This document shows positions 27,197 to 58,130 of a stretch of DNA of 64,000 nt, in pieces (the first letter of the stretch is position 1; each line of letters begins with the position of its first letter). Under the pieces are notes generated by a model. That model worked only from the letters and a program-made list of their open reading frames with translations. It searched no databases and was not told the origin of the DNA. The DNA is from Heteronotia binoei (taxonomy: Eukaryota): positions 42,718,001 through 42,782,000 of the forward strand of contig NC_083237.1 in assembly GCF_032191835.1 (NCBI RefSeq), read 5' to 3'. Position numbers and translations under genes: made by a program.

Positions 27197-30100
27197 CTTG
27201 ACTAGCATCTCTGGAGAACTACTGCCAGTTAGAAGAAGCCATTTTGAGCACGATGGGCCAAGAATCTGATAGCATAAGGCAGCGTTCCATGACATCTAGG
27301 TGAAAAGCTGTGGTTCAGTGTTATGTGCACAAAGTCCCAGTTCAACCCCGCACCCAGAAAAGAAGTGTTGCCAACTTAAGAACATAAGAGAAGCCATGTT
27401 GGATCTGTAACATAGTGGCCAAAACCTGGAGATCTCCAAGAATTACAACTCATCTCCAGACTCCAGAGATTAGTTCCCCTGGAGAAAATGGCAGGTTTGC
27501 CTGCTGAGGTCCCTCTCACTCCAAACACCACCCCCAAATCTCCAGGAATCTCCCAAACTGAAGCTTAGAGCTCTAGGTGTCAGATAATATGTGATGTGAA
27601 AGACGTCTCCCTGAGACTCTAGGCAGCCACTATTAGTCACAGAAGACAATACTGACCTTGATGGAACAAGGCTATGACTCAGAATAAGGTAGCTTAACAT
27701 ATTTGTGTATATAAGGAAGAAAACTTTTTTAAAAATCATGAATGCAAACAGAATAAAATTTCTGTGAATATACAATAGGAAGGGATCGTATACCACCCTG
27801 AGTGAGACTGAGTAGGTTGATTATATGGTAGATGGATAATCAGCTTTATAAACACCATACCAGATTCTGATCATGAACATTTTGGTGACATGAAAGTTTT
27901 GGCCCCTTCAGCTATGCCTATTTTGTTTATATCAAAATGAAAAGTGTATTGTTCTATGAAGCCTCTGGTGCTTGAATTTTTTTTTTTAAAAAAAAAACCC
28001 TTTGTATAGTGTACAAAGAAACCATCTGTTATCTGGCACATTGAAGGCTTTTTAGAAAACGTTGACTTGGTGAAGAGAAGACCCTATCCAGACCACCAGT
28101 ACAGCATTCTCAGGTGGTTGAACATAGCGATGGGGGGGGGGTCGTCAAAGTGGAAAACCCACCAAGCATATCTCTCAAGATATTTCAAATGTTGTGGTTT
28201 TCTTCACCACTGTGGTTTCCACCCTTTGTGAGAAGCATGTATGCAGCTGTGTACGGGGAATATGTTTTGCTGAACTTAGCAGGTGGTTCAGTAAAGTGAG
28301 TGGAAGTTTACAGTCAAAACATTCTTGTCCCATTTTTTTTTTTTTTTTGCATCCTGAAGGCCTATCATCAATGTGAGGAAGCATCATATTTATAAACAGA
28401 AGCAGATTTGAATAAAAGCTATTCCTCTCTGTTTCTCTTATCAGACTCATCAGCAGGATTTGATACAGCAGGCCATGTCATCCTGTTGAAATGCTTGGAA
28501 GTAGGATCAGTGATTAAGAAATTGGATTGGTTCAAATCATTGCTTAAAGGCAAGACATTTTTACAGTGTAGGATCTGCTGTCAGGCCTCCCCCCTGAGTA
28601 CTCAATAAACAGTCCATAGTATTTCTCATGGTTCAATTTATTAAGAATTTCAGGTGAGATATACCCCAGACCTCGGTCTGAGCCAGAACTAACATTCATC
28701 AATAATATAGGTTCAGCAAAAGGCACAGCATAGTGCCCTCCCTCCCTTGTTAACTTTTCCCAACCACTGCTTTGGACTTTTGGTTTCCCTTCCCATCATG
28801 TCCAAAATTGCAGTCTTGATACAATGTTCCCAGGCAGTGGCCTCCAGACACAATATCCAGGCCCAGCAAGCAGGTGCGAAGCATGAGAAACAATAGACAA
28901 CAACAGTTGTAGAAATATGCAGTAGAAAGACAAGTACAGTAAATCAGTAACCCTTTCATGGCAAACCTTTGACATCTGCCTTGTTTGGTTTCAGTGTACT
29001 CAGTCTTGTTCCCATGCTATTCAATACTTATGTAAAGGCCAACTATTTTAGCTAAGTGGCTTCCTTTTCTGGATTACTGCCTGGTCCTTTTTAACTGAAG
29101 ATGTCAGGGAGTGAACCTGGGACCTTCTGCATGCCAAGCAGAGGCTCTGCCACTGAGCCATAGTCCCTTCCCATGTTCAACCCACTAGGACTGGGGAGAC
29201 CTGGGTTCTTATAAACTATGGTAACTTGAAACTTTCAATTTAGGCAATGAAAGTAGTCCCTGAAAACTATTTGTATAGCTGAGGCCAATATGTAAAACTA
29301 TAAGGTAACACAGTCCCTTAAATACTATGTCGTAGAGTTTAAACAGCCCTTATCCAGCTCACAAAACCACAGTTTACGTTTCAGTCAATACCAGAAAAGT
29401 CAAGCATCAACTACTCAGTTGTTTGGTTCCTTCAATTTTTTTCCATATTCTCTGATGTAAAATGCTATGGCCAGAGATAATTCAATTTGAAACTGAAATC
29501 TTTATTTTTATAGTTCCATTGTGATACCTTTTTGTAACATAGAAATGAGAAGCGATGCAGCACACTTGGAAGATTCTTTTCAATCCATATTTATCTCAGT
29601 AATTCTCCCTTTGTTATTCAGCTGTTGCACAAGATCCAAGTGTCTCTAATCAAACACGTACTTCCTCTCAAAGAAAATTCTGCTCAAAAGCTTGTAATAA
29701 TGTAGAAACTAATGCCTTCAATATAAAAGTTTGCCTTTTTTCAATCCTTATTTAGGACTTAGGTGACTCTCACGCCTTCTAGTAAATGAAGGGCATTATG
29801 GTGGTCAGTCCCCTAGTAAAATTCTTACTGTTAGATTTACTACTAGAGGAAAGACTGCAGAATTTCTTGAGTGTCTACCTGGGAAAAATCAAATTGACCT
29901 GGATAGTGACAATGTATAAGTGATATGTATGACCTCATGTACAGAATGAGCAGTGACCTCTACACAAGTTTTTTCCAGTACACATTAGCACCATTTTGTC
30001 TGAAAGGTGCAGCAGTGAAACCACACATGGTAAGAAGATATGCATCACATTTAACCTTTATGTATGGTTAAACATAACACCTGAAAAGGCTCTGCATACA

Positions 30101-31532: not shown

Positions 31533-31910
31533 CAGCGCTGGAAAGAGGAATTGCCATTTTTCCTTGGCTTTAAAGCCAAGAAAAAACATTTGTCAGTTTC
31601 TCTCTGAAGCACTCGCCGAGTTCAGCCAGTGCAGGAGAGGGGAATCGCCATTTTCCCTTGGATTTAAGGAGGGGGTTCCCCCCACCCCTTAAAGCCAAGG
31701 AAAAACACTTGTCAGTTTCCCTCTGCAGCACAGGGCCGAGTTCAACCAGAGCAGGAGAGGGGAATTGCCCTTTTTCCCTTGGCTTTAAGGAGGGGGGACT
31801 CCCCCCTCCCCTTAAAGCCAAGGAAAAAATACTTGTCAGTTTCCCTCTGCAGCATGGTCCAAGTTCAGCCAGTGCAGGAGAGGGGAATTGCCATTTTTCC
31901 TTGGCTTTAT
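31533..31910. repeat. ~120-bp tandem array with internal hairpins
   Basis: Units start near 31535, 31633, 31753 and 31877 (ggagaggggaat...). The two complete units contain ttttcccttggctttaaggagggg...ccccttaaagccaaggaaaaa. Confidence 0.85.
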
Positions 31911-32547
31911 AGGCCCCCCAACCTTCCAAATCCTGGCTACAGCCCTGGTAATCAACAAAACAATGAGAATGCGGCCCTCCCCGACCGCGCCGCCGCAGGT
32001 GGCTGTGGGCGGGGGCCGTGTTTGCCTCCCCGGATGGAGCGAGGCAGCGCTTCCCGCCCATACGGGGATTTGCAGGGCGGGGGCTGGGGCTTTATAAGCC
32101 CAGCCTCGCCCTCCTACACGCACTTCGCCGCGTGTTTTGGTCTTACCAGATCGGGCTCTCGTCTTTTTTCCCGACGAGGCCTGTGGCGGCGGAGGCAGTT
32201 AGCTGTTCCTCCTTGGCTTGACTTCGGAGCTTTGGCGTGCCTCTCTCTCAGCAGAGCCGTCCTTCGAGCTGCCTTGCCTTGCGTAGCGGCAGCGCGCAAG
32301 CCGCACCTTGCTTTTCCTCGCGTTGTTTTCGGCTGCTCCAGCTGATCGTCGGGGAGAGGTCGGGCTGTATAAGCGGCGTTCGAGCAGGCTTGTTTGAGCC
32401 GCGGCCTGCTTCTTGCGGCGGCGCGCGAGCCGCGCCTTGCTTTTCGGCCCAGACTCAGTCTGCTCCAGCCGGTCGCGGAGCGAAGAGGCGGTAAAAGCGG
32501 CTTTTGAGCTGCTGGGGTGGGGGGGCTTCCCTTGTTCCCTTGAGATT

Positions 32548-32759
32548 GGGAGGGACGGTGGCTCAGTTTTAGAGCACCTGCTTTGTTAGCAGTAGGTCCC
32601 AGGTTCAATTCCCAGCATCTCCAACTGAAAAGGGTCCTAGGCATGTAGGCATGGAAAACCTCAGCTCGAGACCCTGGAGAGCTGCTGCCAGTCTGGGTAG
32701 ACAGTGCTGACTTCGATGGACCCTGGGTCTGATTCAGTATATGGCAGCTTCATACGTTC
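32548..32759 (+). mobile_element. tRNA-derived SINE (Squam3-like) inside the Ngaro element
   Basis: gggagggacggtggctcag...ggttcaattccc...ggcagcttcatacgttc; same family as 45289-45498. Confidence 0.85.
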
Positions 32760-33036
32760 TCCATATTTTCTCTGTGGGTCTGGGGCTGGTGCCTCTGGGC
32801 TTCCTTGAAGTCGGGTGGGGACTGATTCAGTAGAAGGCAGCCTCATTTTGTAGGGGGTTGTCCCCCCCCCCTTTTTGCTAGGAGTTCTTTCTTGGCCTGG
32901 GTTAGCCTGGTGATTTGAACTTAGCCTGGTTGGGCAGCGGCAGCCCTTTACTATCCCTGGTGTTGGGACAATGCCTCCCAGGCATTCGGGCTGCAGGCTT
33001 ATTGCTCAGTGGGGCTTTCAGCCTGCTGTTTGGAAA

Positions 33037-34270
33037 TGGCTTCCAAAACGGCTAGGGGACTTCCAAGGGCAAGTAGCCTGCTAAGGCACAGGGTAAAAGG
33101 CCTGTCCCCTCCAGGCCCTGGGTTTGAGTAGGAGACCAACACCTGGCTGCCCATTGTTGAATGTTTGTCCGCTCTGGAGTGCCAATACTCGGATTCTGAA
33201 GATGGGTGGGTTCCTGCTGAGGCCCCTGCGCGTCCTGTGGATTGCAGCGCTGCACCTGTTGTGCTTGCTGTGGCGTACCCGGTCAAAAGGTAAGCTGGAT
33301 GGGCCTGGGCCGATTGGCGCTTGGCCTTGGGGTGTGCGGCCCCACTTTTTCAGCCTGCAGCTTCCCTGCTGGCAACCGCGGGTGGCCCATGTGCAGCTTC
33401 TGGGTCCTCGGGATCCACGGCGCCAACTGACGGTTGGGGAACTTGCGGGCAGGGACAGATTCTCCCGTGGGGCGCTACGTTTGCCTCCTCAACGCCCAGT
33501 GCTATGTCTATGTCCCAAGGGTTTAGAGGTCAGGTCACGCAGGGTGGACCTTTGCCATGGGCCAGTTGTGGGTAGGTCTGGCCTCTCGATTGGCCCTGCA
33601 CCTCCAGCTGTTTTGGGGGTTGCCCCCCCAGCCTTATTGGGGTCGGTCCCGTTTCAGTGTCGCCCCCGTTGGGGTCACGGCCGGGTCGCCGGGTGATCAC
33701 TTGATGGTGGCCACTTGCGAGAGGATATTTAAGGGCGTGTATGTGGCGTCTTTGGCCTTCTTATAGGGAACTGGAGAAGTAGGATAAAGATGAACTGGAT
33801 GAGAGGGACAAGGAAAGGATTAAACGGAGGAAGGTGGAAAGAAATTGGGTTAACTGGTAGCCCGGATTTCTGATCTATGCTGGTGTTATAGCGCGTGCAC
33901 AGCCTTTATGGGCTGCACCGCTATTCCAGTATTGTGATATTGTCTGCAAGGCGTATACGGACCCCTCGGGTGCTGCATGGTTGCAGTTCGACTAGGAGTT
34001 CCGGATGAGGGCTGCCCTCCACCCTTCTATGCCTTGGGTCCAAATTACTCAGCAGCTTTGGCTGCAGCACATGTCCCCCGCTAAGCCTAATGCCGGGGAC
34101 AGGTCTGACAGTGGGCACCTGGTTAGTAGGCAGGCTGGTCCGTCTGGTCCCCGCATTTGCGCGGGGTAGTCGGCCAACCCCGGCTCTTGTGCTGGGAGTA
34201 CTCGTCCCGGGAGGTTTGCAATCGTAAGACCTGCAAGTACAAGCATGAGGCCCACTGTGTGGGGGTCGCA
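33037..34270 (+). pseudogene. Ngaro gag-like ORF1 (disrupted)
   Basis: Fragments NWVNW*PGFLIYAGVIARAQP, AWLQFD*EFRMRAA and CWEYSSREVCNRKTCKYKHE (CCCH-like finger); stops and frameshifts. Confidence 0.7.
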
Positions 34271-34329
34271 TGCCTTGTCTGCATGCAGCAAGCCCCAGCC
34301 CCTGAGTGGCACCAGGAGGCTCGGGGAGG

Positions 34330-35330
34330 GGGACGGAGCCCATGGTTCTGGTAAAGGGTCCCAGCCCCATCAAAGTGAGAGTTCTCATCAAAATGTTAGC
34401 CAGCTACCCTAGGGTAAGCAATAGAGATTACTTACGTGAAGGTTTTTGTTTGGTTCATCCCATTAGGGTCCTCGTGGACCCTGTATGGCAAAGAATTTAT
34501 TGTCTGTAGTGGTATGGAGTGAGTTGTTAGAGAAAAGATTTCAAAGGAGAGGGCCGAGGGCAGGGTGTCGGGCCCTTTCGATGCCTCTCCTGTTCCTAAG
34601 TTGCGGGTTTCACCTTTGGGTGTGGTTCCCAAAGGCCCCTGGTGAATTTCGGTTACTTCCCTACTTATCTTTCCCTAGGGGTGGGTCGGTGAATGACCCT
34701 ATTCCCGATTTCCGTTCCACGGTCCGATATACGTCCTGCGACCAGGCTGTCAAGGTCGTCCGGCGTGGGTGGACTTGCGCTCAGCTAGCTAAGTGCAACA
34801 CAAAGTCTGCATTTCGCCTGTCACTGGTTCACCTGGATGATGTTGAGCTCCTGGGCTTTATGTTCGACGGCAAGTTTTTACCGGGACCGGGCACTGCCCA
34901 TGGGGTGTGCTGTTTCGTGTTCGGCTTTCGACCGTGTTAGCACTTTCTTGGAATCGATGTGCAGATGATGTCCGACGCTGCTGGTACTGTTGGTTTTGGG
35001 GTCTATTTCCGTGGCCGATGGTGTGCTGAGTTGTGACCCGCCACGTGGTTGGATATGGCCTTTGCCGTAATTCAACGTTTTAGAATTTTCCTAATCGCAG
35101 TTGCGGTGCGATTGGGGGTAGGATTTGGCCAACCATGTTGTTCACTGTTGGTGTGACTACATGGCTGTGGTCTAGGTGATTTACTCCCTCATGCCCAAGT
35201 CGGTCCCGGTTATGTTCCTTGTTCGCTTTTTTACCTTGTGTTGTGTAAGGTTAAACATTTTGTTCCTTTGCCACGCATTGCCCGGTGTGCAACGGGGTCG
35301 CGGACGCGTTGTCGCATCGTTAGATGGAGC
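34330..35330 (+). pseudogene. Ngaro reverse transcriptase/RNase H (internally deleted)
   Basis: KAPGEFRLLPYLSFPRGGSVND and LAKCNTKSAFRL..LLGF..DGKF, then a jump near 34953 to RNase H MSDAAGTVGFGVYF. The YxDD region is absent. Confidence 0.85.
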
Positions 35331-35389
35331 GGTTTCGACTTATCGCACCAGGGGCGGACCTCCTGCCGGCTCGGATGCCCCCAGAGATG

Positions 35390-36280
35390 TGGCGGCTTGG
35401 AGAGTCGAGGCCAACCGGGCCAGGATGCTTTCCCTAACCCCCTCTATCCGCAAGGTCTATGATCGCTCTGTTGAGCAGTTCGGCCTTCAGTGAGCAGGTA
35501 GTATTGGCAGACCTTTGGCCGATTCCGGCGGCTCATCTCATGCAGTTCTGCGTTGAGCTGAAAGGTAAGTGGTTGGTGGTAAGGACCATTTGAGCCAAGT
35601 CGGCTGCACTGGCGTTCACCAACAAGGTGAAGGGGTCATCTGACGCCTCTGATGATTTAGAATTCGTAAAATATTGGAGGGCGGGGCCCGTGAGCAAGGC
35701 TCGCGGCCTGATACACGGCACCCCCCCCCTTCGCCTGACATCATTGCCAGCGGTTTGTTTTTTCCCTAAACTCGAGGCTGTTTTGCTTCAGGCAGCCGCC
35801 ATGACCGCCTCCTTTTGGTGCGCTTAGAGTCAGGGAGTTGGTGGTCCGCTCGCTGAAGGATTGTTCTGGCCGAGTTCTCCATGCTGGAGATGTTAAAAAT
35901 TACTGGGGACTCCGCAGCCTTAAGGGTGCGTGGGTCTTGGACTGACCAGAGGCAGCGGGACGTCACGATTACATAGGGCTCGTGCCATGGTCGTGATCCA
36001 GCCCTGTTTTAGCTTTGGCCGAGACATTGCTGTGCAGGGTACTATGCCGGCCCCCCCCTTTTTTCCCGGCACGAGGACGGGTCCTCGTTAACTACAGTCC
36101 AATTTTGGTCCGTGACCAGCCACGCCTCGGACAGGCTTGGGCTGTCGGGATTTTGGTCTGGGACCCATTTATTTGGGTTGGGGCGGCATCAATTCCTGCA
36201 GCCATGGGGTCATTGGGCCGGCCATTCAACAGGTTGGGAGATGGCGGTCCCCGGCGTACATGGACTACGTTCGTCCTGTG
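35390..36280 (+). pseudogene. Ngaro tyrosine recombinase (disrupted)
   Basis: FGALRVRELV (catalytic Arg), a degenerate HSFRIG box (GTHLF/WVGAAS) and IQQVGRWRSPAYMDYVRP (catalytic Tyr). Confidence 0.85.
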
Positions 36281-36344
36281 TTGCCTGGCGAGTTTTGCTG
36301 GGTTTCACATTGTTATTTTCTCTGTTACAGGTGCTGTGGCGCAG

Positions 36345-36900
36345 GGCGAGAGGCAGAGGATACTGATCGCCGGCCACGGCATGGTTTTGGGGCCGCCCTC
36401 CAAGCCCGACTCGAGTTTGGGTTCGCAGTTGGGGCTTAGTGATGGGCGGCCGTTGAGTGGCAGGGCCGTCGGGGCCTTCGCTGGGACGGGCTCCTGCCAC
36501 TCTTGTTTTGGGGAGGAATGGTCCTCCGCCACTCACCTTGCTTATTCTCCTGGGAGGCAACGATTTGGGCCTGGTGCAGGGGAGGGCCCTGTCACTTTGG
36601 CAGTCGTTGGCCTCAAGGTGATCCGGAGCAGGTGGCCCGAGGTGCGGTTACATTGGTCCGCCATTCTTCCACGGCGGGTGTGGTGAGGGCTTAGGACCCC
36701 CTTTTGGGTTGAGAGAGCCAGGCGCAGGGCCAGCAGAGCGATCCGGAATGCGCTCCGAGGGGGCCTTTGCCTTTTTGTTTCACACCCGGCCATCAGGTCG
36801 GACCGGGCGGACCTGTACCGGCAGGACGGAGCCACCTGTCCATTTCTGGGAACAGGGCATTTTTGGGTCGAGTTACAGCTGGGGCTTCGGCAGGCTTTAG
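36345..36900 (+). pseudogene. Ngaro SGNH-hydrolase-like ORF (disrupted)
   Basis: RILIAGHGMV (block I, Ser replaced by Gly), QLGL...VEWQGRRGLRWDGLLP across frameshifts, and LYRQDG..HLS. Confidence 0.7.
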
Positions 36901-38173
36901 GCCTGCCGGTGGGCCCAGGGGCCTAAGCTGAGGCTTGGCCCTGGGGTGGCGGGTGTTTAAGTTGGTTTGCAGGTTCCGGTGAGCACCCACGGTTTTCCCT
37001 GATTTAAGGAAGTAGCGGGATGGGACAGTAGCGGGGTTCTACGGCCCTCTGCTGTCTTGCCCGCTATCGGGTCACCTCTTCGGGCAGGCCGTCCCTGGGT
37101 GGGCAGCCGTGCCGTGGGGTGTAAACCTGGCCGGTGCCGGCCTGGCAGCAGCCGCTTTCAGCTGGCTGCGGCCAGGGGCAGGGTGGCTCGCCCTTCCGGA
37201 CAGGGAAGGGTCCTGGGGTGCCTCCCTTGGCCTGTCCGGTAGCTGGTAAGTTGCCCATGCTGTTTAACTCAATAAAGTTGCCCTGTTTTCCATCCAACTT
37301 TGGCGTTGTCTCGTTCTTCCGACTGGGGGGGCAATGCGGCCCTCCCCGACCGCGCCGCCGCAGGTGGCTGTGGGCGGGGGCCGTGTTTGCCTCCCCGGAT
37401 GGAGCGAGGCAGCGCTTCCCGCCCATACGGGGATTTGCAGGGCGGGGGCTGGGGCTTTATAAGCCCAGCCTCGCCCTCCTACACGCACTTCGCCGCGTGT
37501 TTTGACCCTCCCTCCCTCCCTTTAATAGTACAGGTTTTTCGGTCGCTGTTTTTACGGGGCCAGGTAGGAATTTTTTCATCCCAGCTGATTGGCCTTTGCT
37601 GGGATGTTTTTCGCCTACCTTGTACTATTTGACTGTAGGTTGGGTCTTTAATTGGTAACTTTATTGGCGGGTGTTTAAGTTGGTTTGCAGGTTCCGGTGA
37701 GCACCCACGGTTTCCCCTGATTTAAGGAAGTAGCGGGATGGGACAGTAGCGGGGTTCTACGGCCCTCTGCTGTCTTGCCCGCTATCGGGTCACCTCTTCG
37801 GGCAGGCCGTCCCTGGGTGGGCGGCCGTGCCGTGGGGTGTAAACCTGGCCGGTGCCGGCCTGGCAGCAGCCGCTTTCAGCTGGCTGCGGCCAGGGGCAGG
37901 GTGGCTCGCCCTTCCGGACAGGGAAGGGTCCTGGGGTGCCTCCCTTGGCCTGTCCGGTAGCTGGTAAGTTGCCCATGCTGTTTAACTCAATAAAGTTGCC
38001 CTGTTTTCCATCCAACTTTGGCGTTGTCTCGTTCTTCCGACTGGGGGGGCAATCAACAATTATCGGCTTGGACTACTACCTTTTTTAAATTACTTGAAGA
38101 CTACTTACGAAAGCACCATGAATTTTGTGTTCACCCAACAAAGAATTCCAGGTTAAAAAAGTCATAAAGCCCA

Positions 38174-38525
38174 TAAAGCCAAGGAAAAATACTTGTCAGC
38201 TTCCCTCTGCAGTGCCTGCCAAGTTCAGTCAGTGCTCTAGTAGCTGTTGCCCTCCCTTCCCCATCACCCAAATCATGTAGGGCAGTTCTATTTGAAGGGA
38301 GTGGGAGGGAAGACTATAGGGTGGGGCCATTGAGTGCCCCCTGAAAAATTTATAGGCCCCCCAACCTTCCAAATCTTGGCTACGGCCCTGGTAATCAACA
38401 AATCAATGAGAATCAACAATTATCAACTTGGACTACTACCTTTTTGAAATTACTTGAAGACTACTTATGAAAGCACCATGAATTTTGTGTTCACCCAACA
38501 AAGGAGAATTCCAGGTTAAAAAAGT
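38174..38525 (+). repeat. Local duplicate of the Ngaro target region (empty site)
   Basis: 38351-38415 matches 31906-31970 and 38416-38525 matches 38054-38160, joined with no element between them. Confidence 0.9.
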
Positions 38526-39708
38526 AACAGGCTATCAAGTGTGGGGAAGAAAACACTGTGGAAATTAAACACTGTCAATTCTTTGGGGCATCTAAAAACC
38601 CCCGCAGGTAGGCGTTCTTACTGGATGTCCTGGTTTAGCAGTCAGAGTTTTATTACTTATTATTGGCTTGGAAGCAACATTGTTTTGTGTGTGTGTATGT
38701 GTGTTTTTAGCAAACTATAAGTACCCTCCCAAAGCAGATGCTGCCTTTCTAAATCTGTTGACGTCCATAGGCTTAGAAGGGTATATCAGTGTTTAGGATG
38801 ACCCCATATATTACCAAAACCTTAGAACTTGCATCATTTGAGTTGGATCAGTTTTTTTTTTTAATAATTGAATTGGGAGAGATGCATACCATGAGATAAC
38901 TAGAAATGGATTTGCATATTATAGTTAAGTGGGCAGTATAGAGAATCACAAGTATGTTGCACTCCCCTGTTTTGTGATTTTGATGTAATGAACAAAAATG
39001 AATTTGGGAGGGTGAGATGTATTAGGTGGTCCCACATCCGGAGTTTGCAAACTTCACTTATTTTTTTACCATGTTCCACTGGAAGGATGAAAAGAGAAAG
39101 AGCAGCCTAGGCTTCCCCTCCTCCGCTTCTTCACTGAAATGTGTGAAATTGCCCTGGCTTGAGATAACCACAGAAGTCTGTTTTTTTTTACTGAACAAGA
39201 AGTTGTATTTATTTCAAATGGTAGCTTCCAGCACAAACCAGAGGAAATTGCCTCACTTAATATGCAAACAACTTTCATATAAATTCAGACCATGTCAAGT
39301 CTATCTAACCTGACATTTACTTTGGTGATAAGGACTCTCCAGGAATTCAGGCAGGGAAAGATTTTTCTTAACACTTGCTCTGAGATCCTTTTACTGGAGT
39401 TGAACCTCGTTGCAAATGTATACTTCAGCATACTTTCCCACTACTTTCCCCCTAAAAATAGTCCTCAATGCAGTTTACAAAGTTTAAAACATAAGCTGTA
39501 TGTAATACCACCATGAAAAACACTCTAGGACTGTGTTTAAACCACAAAGAAGAATATATTAACAATGTCAGCTTCAAAATCAGCAGTCACCATCCTACAG
39601 CATTCTAATTCAAAGGTCTTCTGAAAAAGAAAGGTCTTCAACTTAATCCAGAAGACCTCTAGGGGTGGTGCTACTATTAATCCCCAGAGGGAAAGAATTC
39701 CTTTTTTC

Positions 39709-39843
39709 CAGGGGTGGCCAACTGTAGCTCTCCAGATGTTTTTGCCTACAACTCCCATCAGCCCCAGCCAGCATGGCTGATGGCTGGGGCTGATGGGAGT
39801 TATAGGCAAAAAACATCTGGAGAGCTACAGTTGGCCACCCCTG
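39709..39843. mobile_element. 135-bp palindromic hAT (Charlie-like) MITE
   Basis: caggggtggccaa...ttggccacccctg, almost fully self-complementary; TSD cttttttc/ctttattc. Confidence 0.9.
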
Positions 39844-45288: not shown

Positions 45289-45498
45289 GAACATATGAAG
45301 CTGCCTTATACTGAATCAGACCCTTGGTCCATCAAAGTCAGTATTGTCTACTCAGACTGGCAGCGGCTCTCCAGGGTCTCAAGTTGAGGTTTTTCACATC
45401 TATTTGCCTGGACCCTTTTTTGGAGATGCCAGGGATTGAACCTGGGACCTTTTGCTTACCAAGCAGATGCTCTACCACTGAGCCACCGTCCCTCCCCC
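45289..45498 (-). mobile_element. tRNA-derived SINE (Squam3-like), well preserved
   Basis: A box tggctcagtggtag, B box ggttcaatccc, 3' end ggcagcttcatatgttc. Confidence 0.88.
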
Positions 45499-56189: not shown

Positions 56190-58130
56190 ATTGATCTGAA
56201 ATGGAATGGGTTTGATGCAGTCAGTTTTTCTGCTGGTGAAAAAGTTTTGAGTGAATCACCTTTGACCACCAAAGAAAGGGTATGCTACATATCAGTACCT
56301 ATCAGACCTAAGAGACCCAGCTGCAACTAAAAAACAGTGTGTCTGTACTCTTTAATCCCATGTTAGTACATCATCTCTATAGTTCTGAGGAAACATTTAT
56401 TCCAGATATAAATGAATATGTTTGAGGAAAATCAAAGTCACTGGCTTCACATCTGACCTCCAGGGTTTCAAGATGCCATTTGTAATGGAATGACACACAA
56501 TCCATTTTCCACATTTCATGTTGTGTGTAAGGCATCTATGTACATTCAGGTACACACATTTTATTTGTTTTAGTACATTTCCATCCTGCCCTCCCATTAT
56601 GGTAAGATTGGGAAATTCAGCCCATACCCAGCCACGCCGTAACAGCGGCCGTAGGCGAGAGGGCCACGGTTGCCTCCTTGTTGGAGGAGAAGACTGCGCT
56701 GTTCCCCGGACATCTGGGGCTTACTGGCGGGCACAGCGTTGGGACTATAAGAGTCCCAGCCCTGCCCAGGCTTTGGATAAGCTGGGGCTCAAGGGGGTCA
56801 AATTTGGAACCCATTCATTTAGTATCGGAGTGGCCTCCACAGTGGTGGCGATGGGGTCCCGGGCCCTGAAATACAGAGGGTTGGCAGGTGGCATTCTGCG
56901 GCCTACCGCTCATATGTGCGTCCTTTGCTTCCTCCAGTTTAGGCACGGCTAACTTTTTCTTAACAAAGTTAGGCTGTGATGGGCATGTTTGGTTCTTGGT
57001 CGACTGTTTTTTTCCTTCCACGTGCGGTGGCTCGTCAGGAGAGGCTGCGTATCCTCATCTGCGGGCACAGTTTTGTGTTCTGGGTGGCCCACTTTGCTCG
57101 GAGGTCCTCAGTTGGTTCTCAATTGGGCCTCAGTGAATGGGCCATGGTTGAGTGGCAGGGTCGCCGTGGGCTTCATTGGCCCGGTCTACTGCCTCTCTTA
57201 TTTCAGGGGAGGAGTGTTTCTCCTCCTGATATACTGGGCATACACCTTGGAGGGAAGGACCTTGGGTGGATGAAAGGAAAAGCCTTTTCTCTGCAGGCGG
57301 TAGCGGACCTGCAGGTCATAATGGGGAGGTAGCCTGGGGTTTGCCTAGTGTGGTCCGCCATTCTGCCTCGTCGGGTCTGGTGAGGGGCGTGGGACCCAGC
57401 AGGCATCGAAAGGGCCAGGAGAAAAGCGAATCAGGCCCTTCAAAAGACAATGGAGAGTGGCCTTGGGATTTTCTTGCCGCACCCAGCAATTCAGGTCAGC
57501 TGTGGTGCGCTGTATAGACCCGACGGAGCGCATCTATCCGATGCAGGTAATAGGGCCTTTTTGGAGGAGCTTCAGCAGGGGCTTCGGGCGGCTCTGGGCT
57601 GCCCAGTGGGGCACTAATACCTAAGCAGAGGCTTGGCATTTGCATTGGCAGAATGAGCAAGGGGTTACAGAAGCCCAGGTGAGCACCCAGGGCACCGCAC
57701 CAGTTGAGTGCAAGCAATCGGCAGGAGCGGCAGATGGGCTCCATGGCTCAGTGTTGAAGAATGCCAATTGTGTGATCCCCCCCCCCACAAGACTGGCTCT
57801 TCCTGGGTGATTATGCCAGTGTGGGGTAGGATGATCTGGCCTGGCCAGCCAACCATGAGCCAAACCTGTGGCTCATGTCAGGGGCAGGGTGGCTCGCTCA
57901 CACCTGGACAAGGAAGGGTCATGGGATGACCCCGGGGCTTGTCCGGCTTCTGGTAACCCTTGCTGTGCTAGTTACAGTATAGTTATATTCAATAAAGGCC
58001 CATTTTTACCAAACATATGTTGTTAGTCTCTTCATTCCAACTTGGGGGGGCAAATGGTACTTTTCCTTGCTGGGGAATTCCCTTAAACTAAGGGTTCCCT
58101 GGAAAGTGCCTGGGTAACCAGCCCCAACCA
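56190..58130 (+). repeat. Paralogue of 43780-44260 interrupted by a Ngaro remnant
   Basis: gggtatgctacatatcagtacctatcagacctaagagacccagctgcaa is identical at ~43876 and ~56278; homology resumes after 58054. Confidence 0.85.
56605..58053 (+). mobile_element. Second, divergent Ngaro remnant (YR C-terminus, SGNH ORF, single B-type end)
   Basis: GTHSFSIGVAS...IQRVGRWHSAAYRSYVRP, ILICGHSFVFW and LYRPDGAHLS. AATAAA is followed by terminal GGGGGGGCAA, as in repeat B of the first element. Confidence 0.88.

Follow-up and report, generated by a model that had tools for sequence, protein, structure and literature searches.

The sequence between positions 31968 and 38053 of the analysed window (the whole stretch of 64,000 nt from Heteronotia binoei, contig NC_083237.1, positions 42,718,001 to 42,782,000 of the forward strand, to which all coordinates given here are relative) is, with a probability that we put at roughly 85%, a tyrosine-recombinase retrotransposon of the Ngaro type (DIRS order) that is non-autonomous, was inserted recently and integrated via exchange at an AAT triplet. 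Direct reading of the sequence and mapping of the repeats by two methods delineate an element of 6.1 kb whose direct repeats are split in the Ngaro manner. The filled site, a donor-type junction and an empty site lie together in this locus, which makes it a clean natural illustration of the recombination model proposed for tyrosine-recombinase retrotransposons, a model with little direct experimental support so far (PMC7192593, where circle junctions could not be amplified).

The repeats are arranged in the order A1, internal region, B1 and A2, a 160-nt spacer and B2. The elements of this architecture and the triplets at its junctions are the following, slashes marking the boundaries of AAT:

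31968–32139, plus strand: A1 repeat, 172 nt including AAT, with TATAAG at 32093–32098; 100% identical to A2
31968–31970, plus strand: AAT of the left junction, host gag/AAT/gcggccc element (sequence read)
36947–37335, plus strand: B1 repeat, 389 nt including AAT, with AATAAA at 37271–37276 (repeat mapping)
37333–37335, plus strand: AAT common to the end of B1 and the start of A2, equivalent to the circle (donor) junction, gggggggcAATgcggccc (sequence read, repeat mapping)
37333–37504, plus strand: A2 repeat (repeat mapping)
37505–37664, plus strand: spacer between A2 and B2, 160 nt, unique within the window (window self-comparison)
37665–38053, plus strand: B2 repeat, with AATAAA at 37989–37994 and the final triplet AAT at 38051–38053 (repeat mapping)

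A1 and A2 match at all 172 of 172 positions and B1 and B2 at 387 of 389, so that the pooled A and B repeats differ at 2 of 561 positions. The overlap of B1 with A2 comprises exactly 3 nt, the AAT at 37333–37335. All repeats of the element are direct, and a repeat search of the window found no inverted repeats involving its ends. CpG dinucleotides make up 5.6% in the element compared to 1.0–1.3% in the flanks.

This layout corresponds to that of vertebrate Ngaro elements, in which split direct repeats are combined with an SGNH ORF located after the recombinase (PMC9210276). As far as the original description is cited there (Goodwin and Poulter 2004 as cited in PMC9210276), DIRS-53_XT and DIRS-54_XT of Xenopus and the zebrafish Ngaro show the same A1-[ORFs]-B1A2-B2 order. 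The element at 31968–38053 further resembles the vertebrate Ngaro group in that an SGNH hydrolase ORF follows the recombinase region and in that inverted terminal repeats are absent. It differs in the sizes of the repeats (172 nt for A and 389 nt for B, compared to 236 and 152 nt in DIRS-53_XT; PMC9210276) and in its state of decay, as the copy carries stops, frameshifts and an inserted SINE and has no Y-x-DD motif. DIRS1-like elements, in contrast, possess inverted terminal repeats and an internal complementary region, neither of which is seen here, and they differ further in having a methyltransferase domain. Crypton DNA transposons are likewise mobilised by a tyrosine recombinase, and the short direct repeats flanking them represent target microhomology rather than a true duplication (PMC13465315), but they employ neither reverse transcription nor split direct repeats.

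At the right end of the element the junction reads gggggggcAAT/caacaatt with AAT at 38051–38053. The bases immediately outside the triplet do not match between the copies (G versus C before A, G versus C after B), and because of these mismatches the shared core is exactly AAT. The preliminary description of this locus had listed four junction strings and had claimed that donor junction and target have precisely this triplet in common; direct reading recovered each string at its position and upheld the claim. According to the published model, the circle has a junction of 3 bp and recombines there with a genomic triplet of the same sequence, so that no target-site duplication arises (PMC3266345, PMC7192593). 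Among the circular junctions tabulated for DIRS1-like elements, AAT is the most frequent (Table 3 in PMC3266345), and in this respect the DIRS1-like model fits the present locus, while for Ngaro elements specifically no terminal triplet was found stated in the accessible literature. At this one locus, the sequence is thus consistent with integration at a triplet common to circle junction and target that leaves no target-site duplication.

The same triplet could nevertheless have arisen as an ordinary 3-bp target-site duplication produced by staggered cutting, in which case the element proper would begin with gcggccc and finish with gggggggc, the AAT at the B1/A2 boundary being coincidental. 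One AAT at either end and a single one in the empty site would, taken alone and at a single locus, be the signature of exactly such an event. The internal triplet, however, would match by chance in only about 1 of 64 cases under a target-duplication model and therefore weighs about 64:1 against it, no ORF resembling an integrase was seen in the element, and the observed pattern is the one predicted by the published model for DIRS-order elements (PMC3266345), which together leave a staggered-cut origin very improbable. The earlier assertion that there is no target duplication accordingly stands as an outcome that fits the published model, but it goes further than the ends themselves do, since AAT flanks both of them and only the AAT at the B1/A2 junction separates the models.

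A second Ngaro copy in the window bears on the same question:

56617–58052, plus strand: second Ngaro remnant, 76%-diverged and internally deleted, with AAT at 56614–56616 and 58053–58055 (alignment)

This remnant consists of an A-like left end, a recombinase C-terminus, an SGNH ORF and one B-like repeat. The sequence is gggaAAT/tcagccc at its left end and gggggggcaAAT/ggtac at its right end; both are compatible with AAT on either side, the boundary being drawn from a 76% alignment and uncertain by about 1 nt. Such AAT-compatible ends speak against a plain 3-bp duplication at the 6.1-kb element. They also bear on a second alternative, namely that a cDNA, circular or linear, was taken up during host repair by microhomology-mediated end joining, with AAT as a chance microhomology and without any site-specific recombination. 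Three nucleotides are a typical length for microhomology, and the copy encodes no working enzyme, both of which would suit such a capture. It is nonetheless highly unlikely, as the donor is broken exactly at the boundary of the B and A repeats and nowhere else in 6 kb, neither junction shows a deletion or filler, and the remnant has the same end positions. In a metagenome scan with the leopard-gecko SGNH protein P0001, five distant SGNH loci were recovered, none of the five with a readable junction between B2 and flank; at metagenome locus L001 a 128-nt repeat is cut by the contig end.

Exchange at AAT as the preferred reading has a familiar counterpart. In phage lambda-type integration by attP x attB, strands are exchanged within a short core that the circle and its target have in common, and after integration of the circle this core is found on both sides of the insert. 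The locus is similar in that a circle would join within a short identical core that flanks both sides of the product. Compared to lambda, the core is only 3 nt long, the donor is a cDNA, and a search for arms with dyad symmetry at both the B/A junction and the target yielded nothing beyond one 6-nt pair.

The empty site lies in a second copy of the host sequence, the relevant segments being:

31809–31967, unstranded: host left flank, copy 1 of the duplicated host unit (blastn, alignment)
38054–38169, unstranded: host right flank, copy 1 of the duplicated host unit (blastn, alignment)
38170–38530, unstranded: uninterrupted copy 2 of the host unit with the empty site, a single AAT at 38411–38413, caatgagAATcaacaatt (blastn, alignment)

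On the left, 31906–31970 and 38349–38413 are identical at 62 of 65 positions (blastn E = 1.65e-24 over 65 nt). On the right, 38051–38143 and 38411–38503 agree ungapped at 89 of 93 positions, and when gaps are allowed the match extends to 38162 and 38525, respectively, with 94% identity over 115 nt (blastn E = 1.27e-45). These E-values place the homology far beyond chance. Both flank matches overlap in the paralogue on one and the same AAT (38411–38413), which confirms the empty duplicate of the host sequence about 360 bp downstream that had been reported for this locus. On the preferred reading, only one of the two host copies served as target, and the other keeps the empty site.

The paralogues are 94–96% identical and lie in a repeat-prone surrounding, where a tandem array with a 123-bp unit precedes the element at 31570–31909 and another unit opens the downstream copy (38170–38530). 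The left part of the downstream copy contains extra sequence missing from the filled copy, which occupies 85 gap columns in the alignment and, together with an adjoining poorly aligned stretch, amounts to about 115 nt, and the extent common to both copies is only about 160 + 115 bp. Because of this indel, the tandem-array unit and the limited identity, the two copies look like the outcome of an old duplication event within this repeat-prone stretch rather than a haplotype copy. The repeat-rich region with its 123-bp array could also be taken to favour an assembly artefact, for instance an insertion-free haplotype placed in tandem with the filled one. Haplotype duplicates would, however, be near-identical over read-length scales, and an artefact of this kind is hardly probable for copies with only 94–96% identity, an indel of roughly 85–115 bp and such a short common extent.

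The relative timing of duplication and insertion can be judged from divergence. The host paralogues differ at 7 of 158 positions and the repeats of the element at 2 of 561 (Fisher p = 5e-4), a contrast that is conservative because the element is CpG-rich. Together with the clean empty copy, for which duplication before insertion is the most parsimonious history, this supports the view that the host duplication predates the insertion, in agreement with the preliminary description. Tyrosine-recombinase reactions are reversible. Duplication could therefore also have followed insertion, with copy 2 losing the element by precise recombinase-mediated excision that would leave a single AAT. Such a course requires a 6.4-kb duplication and then an excision, is less parsimonious and sits poorly with a divergence about ten times higher between the host copies than between the repeats of the element; we regard it as very improbable. 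What is unusual about the locus is solely that an empty site happens to have been preserved in a paralogue beside the insertion. The co-occurrence of filled site, donor junction and empty site had been called unusual as a whole, which overstates the case, as a donor junction occurs in every complete Ngaro, which leaves the empty site in the paralogue as the one fortunate addition.

The integrated product, host-AAT-A...B-AAT-host, together with an internal B-AAT-A junction and an uninterrupted target containing one AAT, can be accommodated in the following course of events. Judging from the sequence, the RNA would start downstream of the TATA box, close to where A1 ends, and would stop past the AATAAA of B2. 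Because TATAAG lies within A (32093) and AATAAA within B (37989), this RNA would be without the greater part of A1 and the last part of B2 while retaining a complete B1-AAT-A2. According to the model in the literature, the internal B1-AAT-A2 would then serve during reverse transcription as the template that restores the ends and closes the circle with a B-AAT-A junction. The family recombinase, presumably supplied in trans, would carry out strand exchange between the circle junction and the host at the AAT present in each, giving host-AAT-A...B-AAT-host with nothing duplicated. Supply in trans is proposed because the copy has no reverse-transcriptase catalytic motif and many stops. Integration of a circular intermediate by a tyrosine recombinase, as suggested earlier for this locus, agrees with the sequence outcome that the published model predicts, the recombinase remnant of this copy having been read by eye only. 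The mechanism and the family are both already described, and the locus does not change the known mechanism.

The coding region of the element is badly decayed by stops and frameshifts, and the following parts could be placed:

32548–32759, plus strand: tRNA-derived SINE within the 5' region of the element (85.5% to 45289–45496 on the minus strand; tRNA model)
34306–34937, plus strand: pol N-terminus with the first reverse-transcriptase motifs, a remnant in broken frames (identity to P0004, protein atlas)
35438–36300, plus strand: presumed remnant of a tyrosine recombinase, interrupted by several stops and frameshifts, for example IQQVGRWRSPAYMDYVRP (by eye)
36330–36923, plus strand: SGNH/GDSL hydrolase ORF remnant, frameshifted (BLASTP to P0001)

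In the SINE, the tRNA model scores 33 bits at 32552–32623. The first reverse-transcriptase motifs at 34630–34880 show 61% identity over 82 aa to the 241-aa protein P0004, and the pol remnant matches reverse-transcriptase fragment clusters in the protein atlas at 0.95–0.97; Pfam gave no result on the pol pieces of the element or on P0004. A Y/F-x-DD motif is absent from every frame of the element and an RNase H-like stretch comes almost directly after the early reverse-transcriptase motifs, for which reasons the polymerase core is apparently deleted and the copy non-autonomous. The presumed recombinase was not recognised by Pfam, by a word search with its C-terminal piece or by PDB sequence searches, and phmmer with a 77-aa piece against 1.84 billion representative proteins returned no recombinase match. 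Two WD40 repeat proteins retrieved in the phmmer search were judged to be noise. The protein atlas offered weak leads to DUF3504, DUF3435 and Phage_int_SAM_1 for this remnant, and Pfam searches on ten and a further six ORF pieces gave nothing usable. Downstream of the presumed recombinase, three pieces of the SGNH hydrolase ORF match P0001 by BLASTP (E = 6e-14, 5e-5 and 1e-9), a protein that carries Pfam PF13472. This ORF is better preserved in the remnant at 56617–58052.

Although the copy has lost its coding capacity, its repeats are near-identical and it has kept its CpG content, which would most simply mean that it was inserted recently, by enzymes supplied in trans, with defects already present in a non-autonomous progenitor. 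The locus thereby points to a Ngaro lineage in a lizard that was mobilised in trans, probably recently; if the insertion in trans was indeed recent, so was Ngaro activity in this lizard lineage. More tentatively, and at somewhat below even odds in our estimation, this lizard may have, or may very recently have had, active Ngaro machinery that mobilises defective relatives in trans and needs little beyond a B-AAT-A junction and a target AAT. Should this hold, the two sites would constitute a minimal pair of natural substrates for the recombinase of a vertebrate retrotransposon.

The first Ngaro element lacks its polymerase core (window 34940-35020): the early reverse-transcriptase motifs give way within ~100 bp to a motif of the FLGID type and to DAAGTVGFG, which resembles the start of an RNase H domain, and a search for the catalytic motif Y-x-DD in every frame of the element found none. 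Despite this loss its terminal repeats are almost identical, and the combination of near-identical repeats with no Y-x-DD implies that the element was mobilised in trans. This element, a second Ngaro copy and the neighbouring repeats comprise the following features.

Repeats and element copies (window positions)
29075-29173, minus strand: tRNA-derived SINE copy
31570-31909: tandem array, 123-bp unit, 2.8 copies, 87% matches
32548-32759: tRNA-derived SINE copy within the 5' region of the first Ngaro element
37505-37664: A2-B2 spacer of the first Ngaro element, 160 nt, unique within the window
39709-39843: two nested inverted repeats of 35 nt, one fully (100%) and the other 94% complementary
45289-45496, minus strand: tRNA-derived SINE copy
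56617-58052: second Ngaro remnant, 76% identity to the first element within the parts common to both

In the second remnant the recombinase C-terminus directly abuts an A-like end, the B-like repeat is single and A2/B2 are missing, a layout which suggests that an internal deletion and recombination between B1 and B2 produced it. Its SGNH ORF carries only one or two breaks and is 72% identical to the leopard-gecko SGNH hydrolase protein P0001. A distant SGNH relative (36% identity) is encoded on the metagenome contig L001, where it is followed by a 128-nt direct repeat (927-1054 and 2318-2445, 1391 bp apart) that extends into the contig end; this repeat possibly represents B1 and B2 of a Ngaro-like element from a eukaryote.

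The 123-bp array is built of internally palindromic units and gives microRNA-precursor-like matches in Rfam, all of them sub-threshold, and the downstream host copy opens at 38170 with another partial unit. The nested inverted repeats are possibly a small hairpin-forming transposon. Within the SINE in the Ngaro 5' region, the tRNA model scores 33 bits at 32552-32623.
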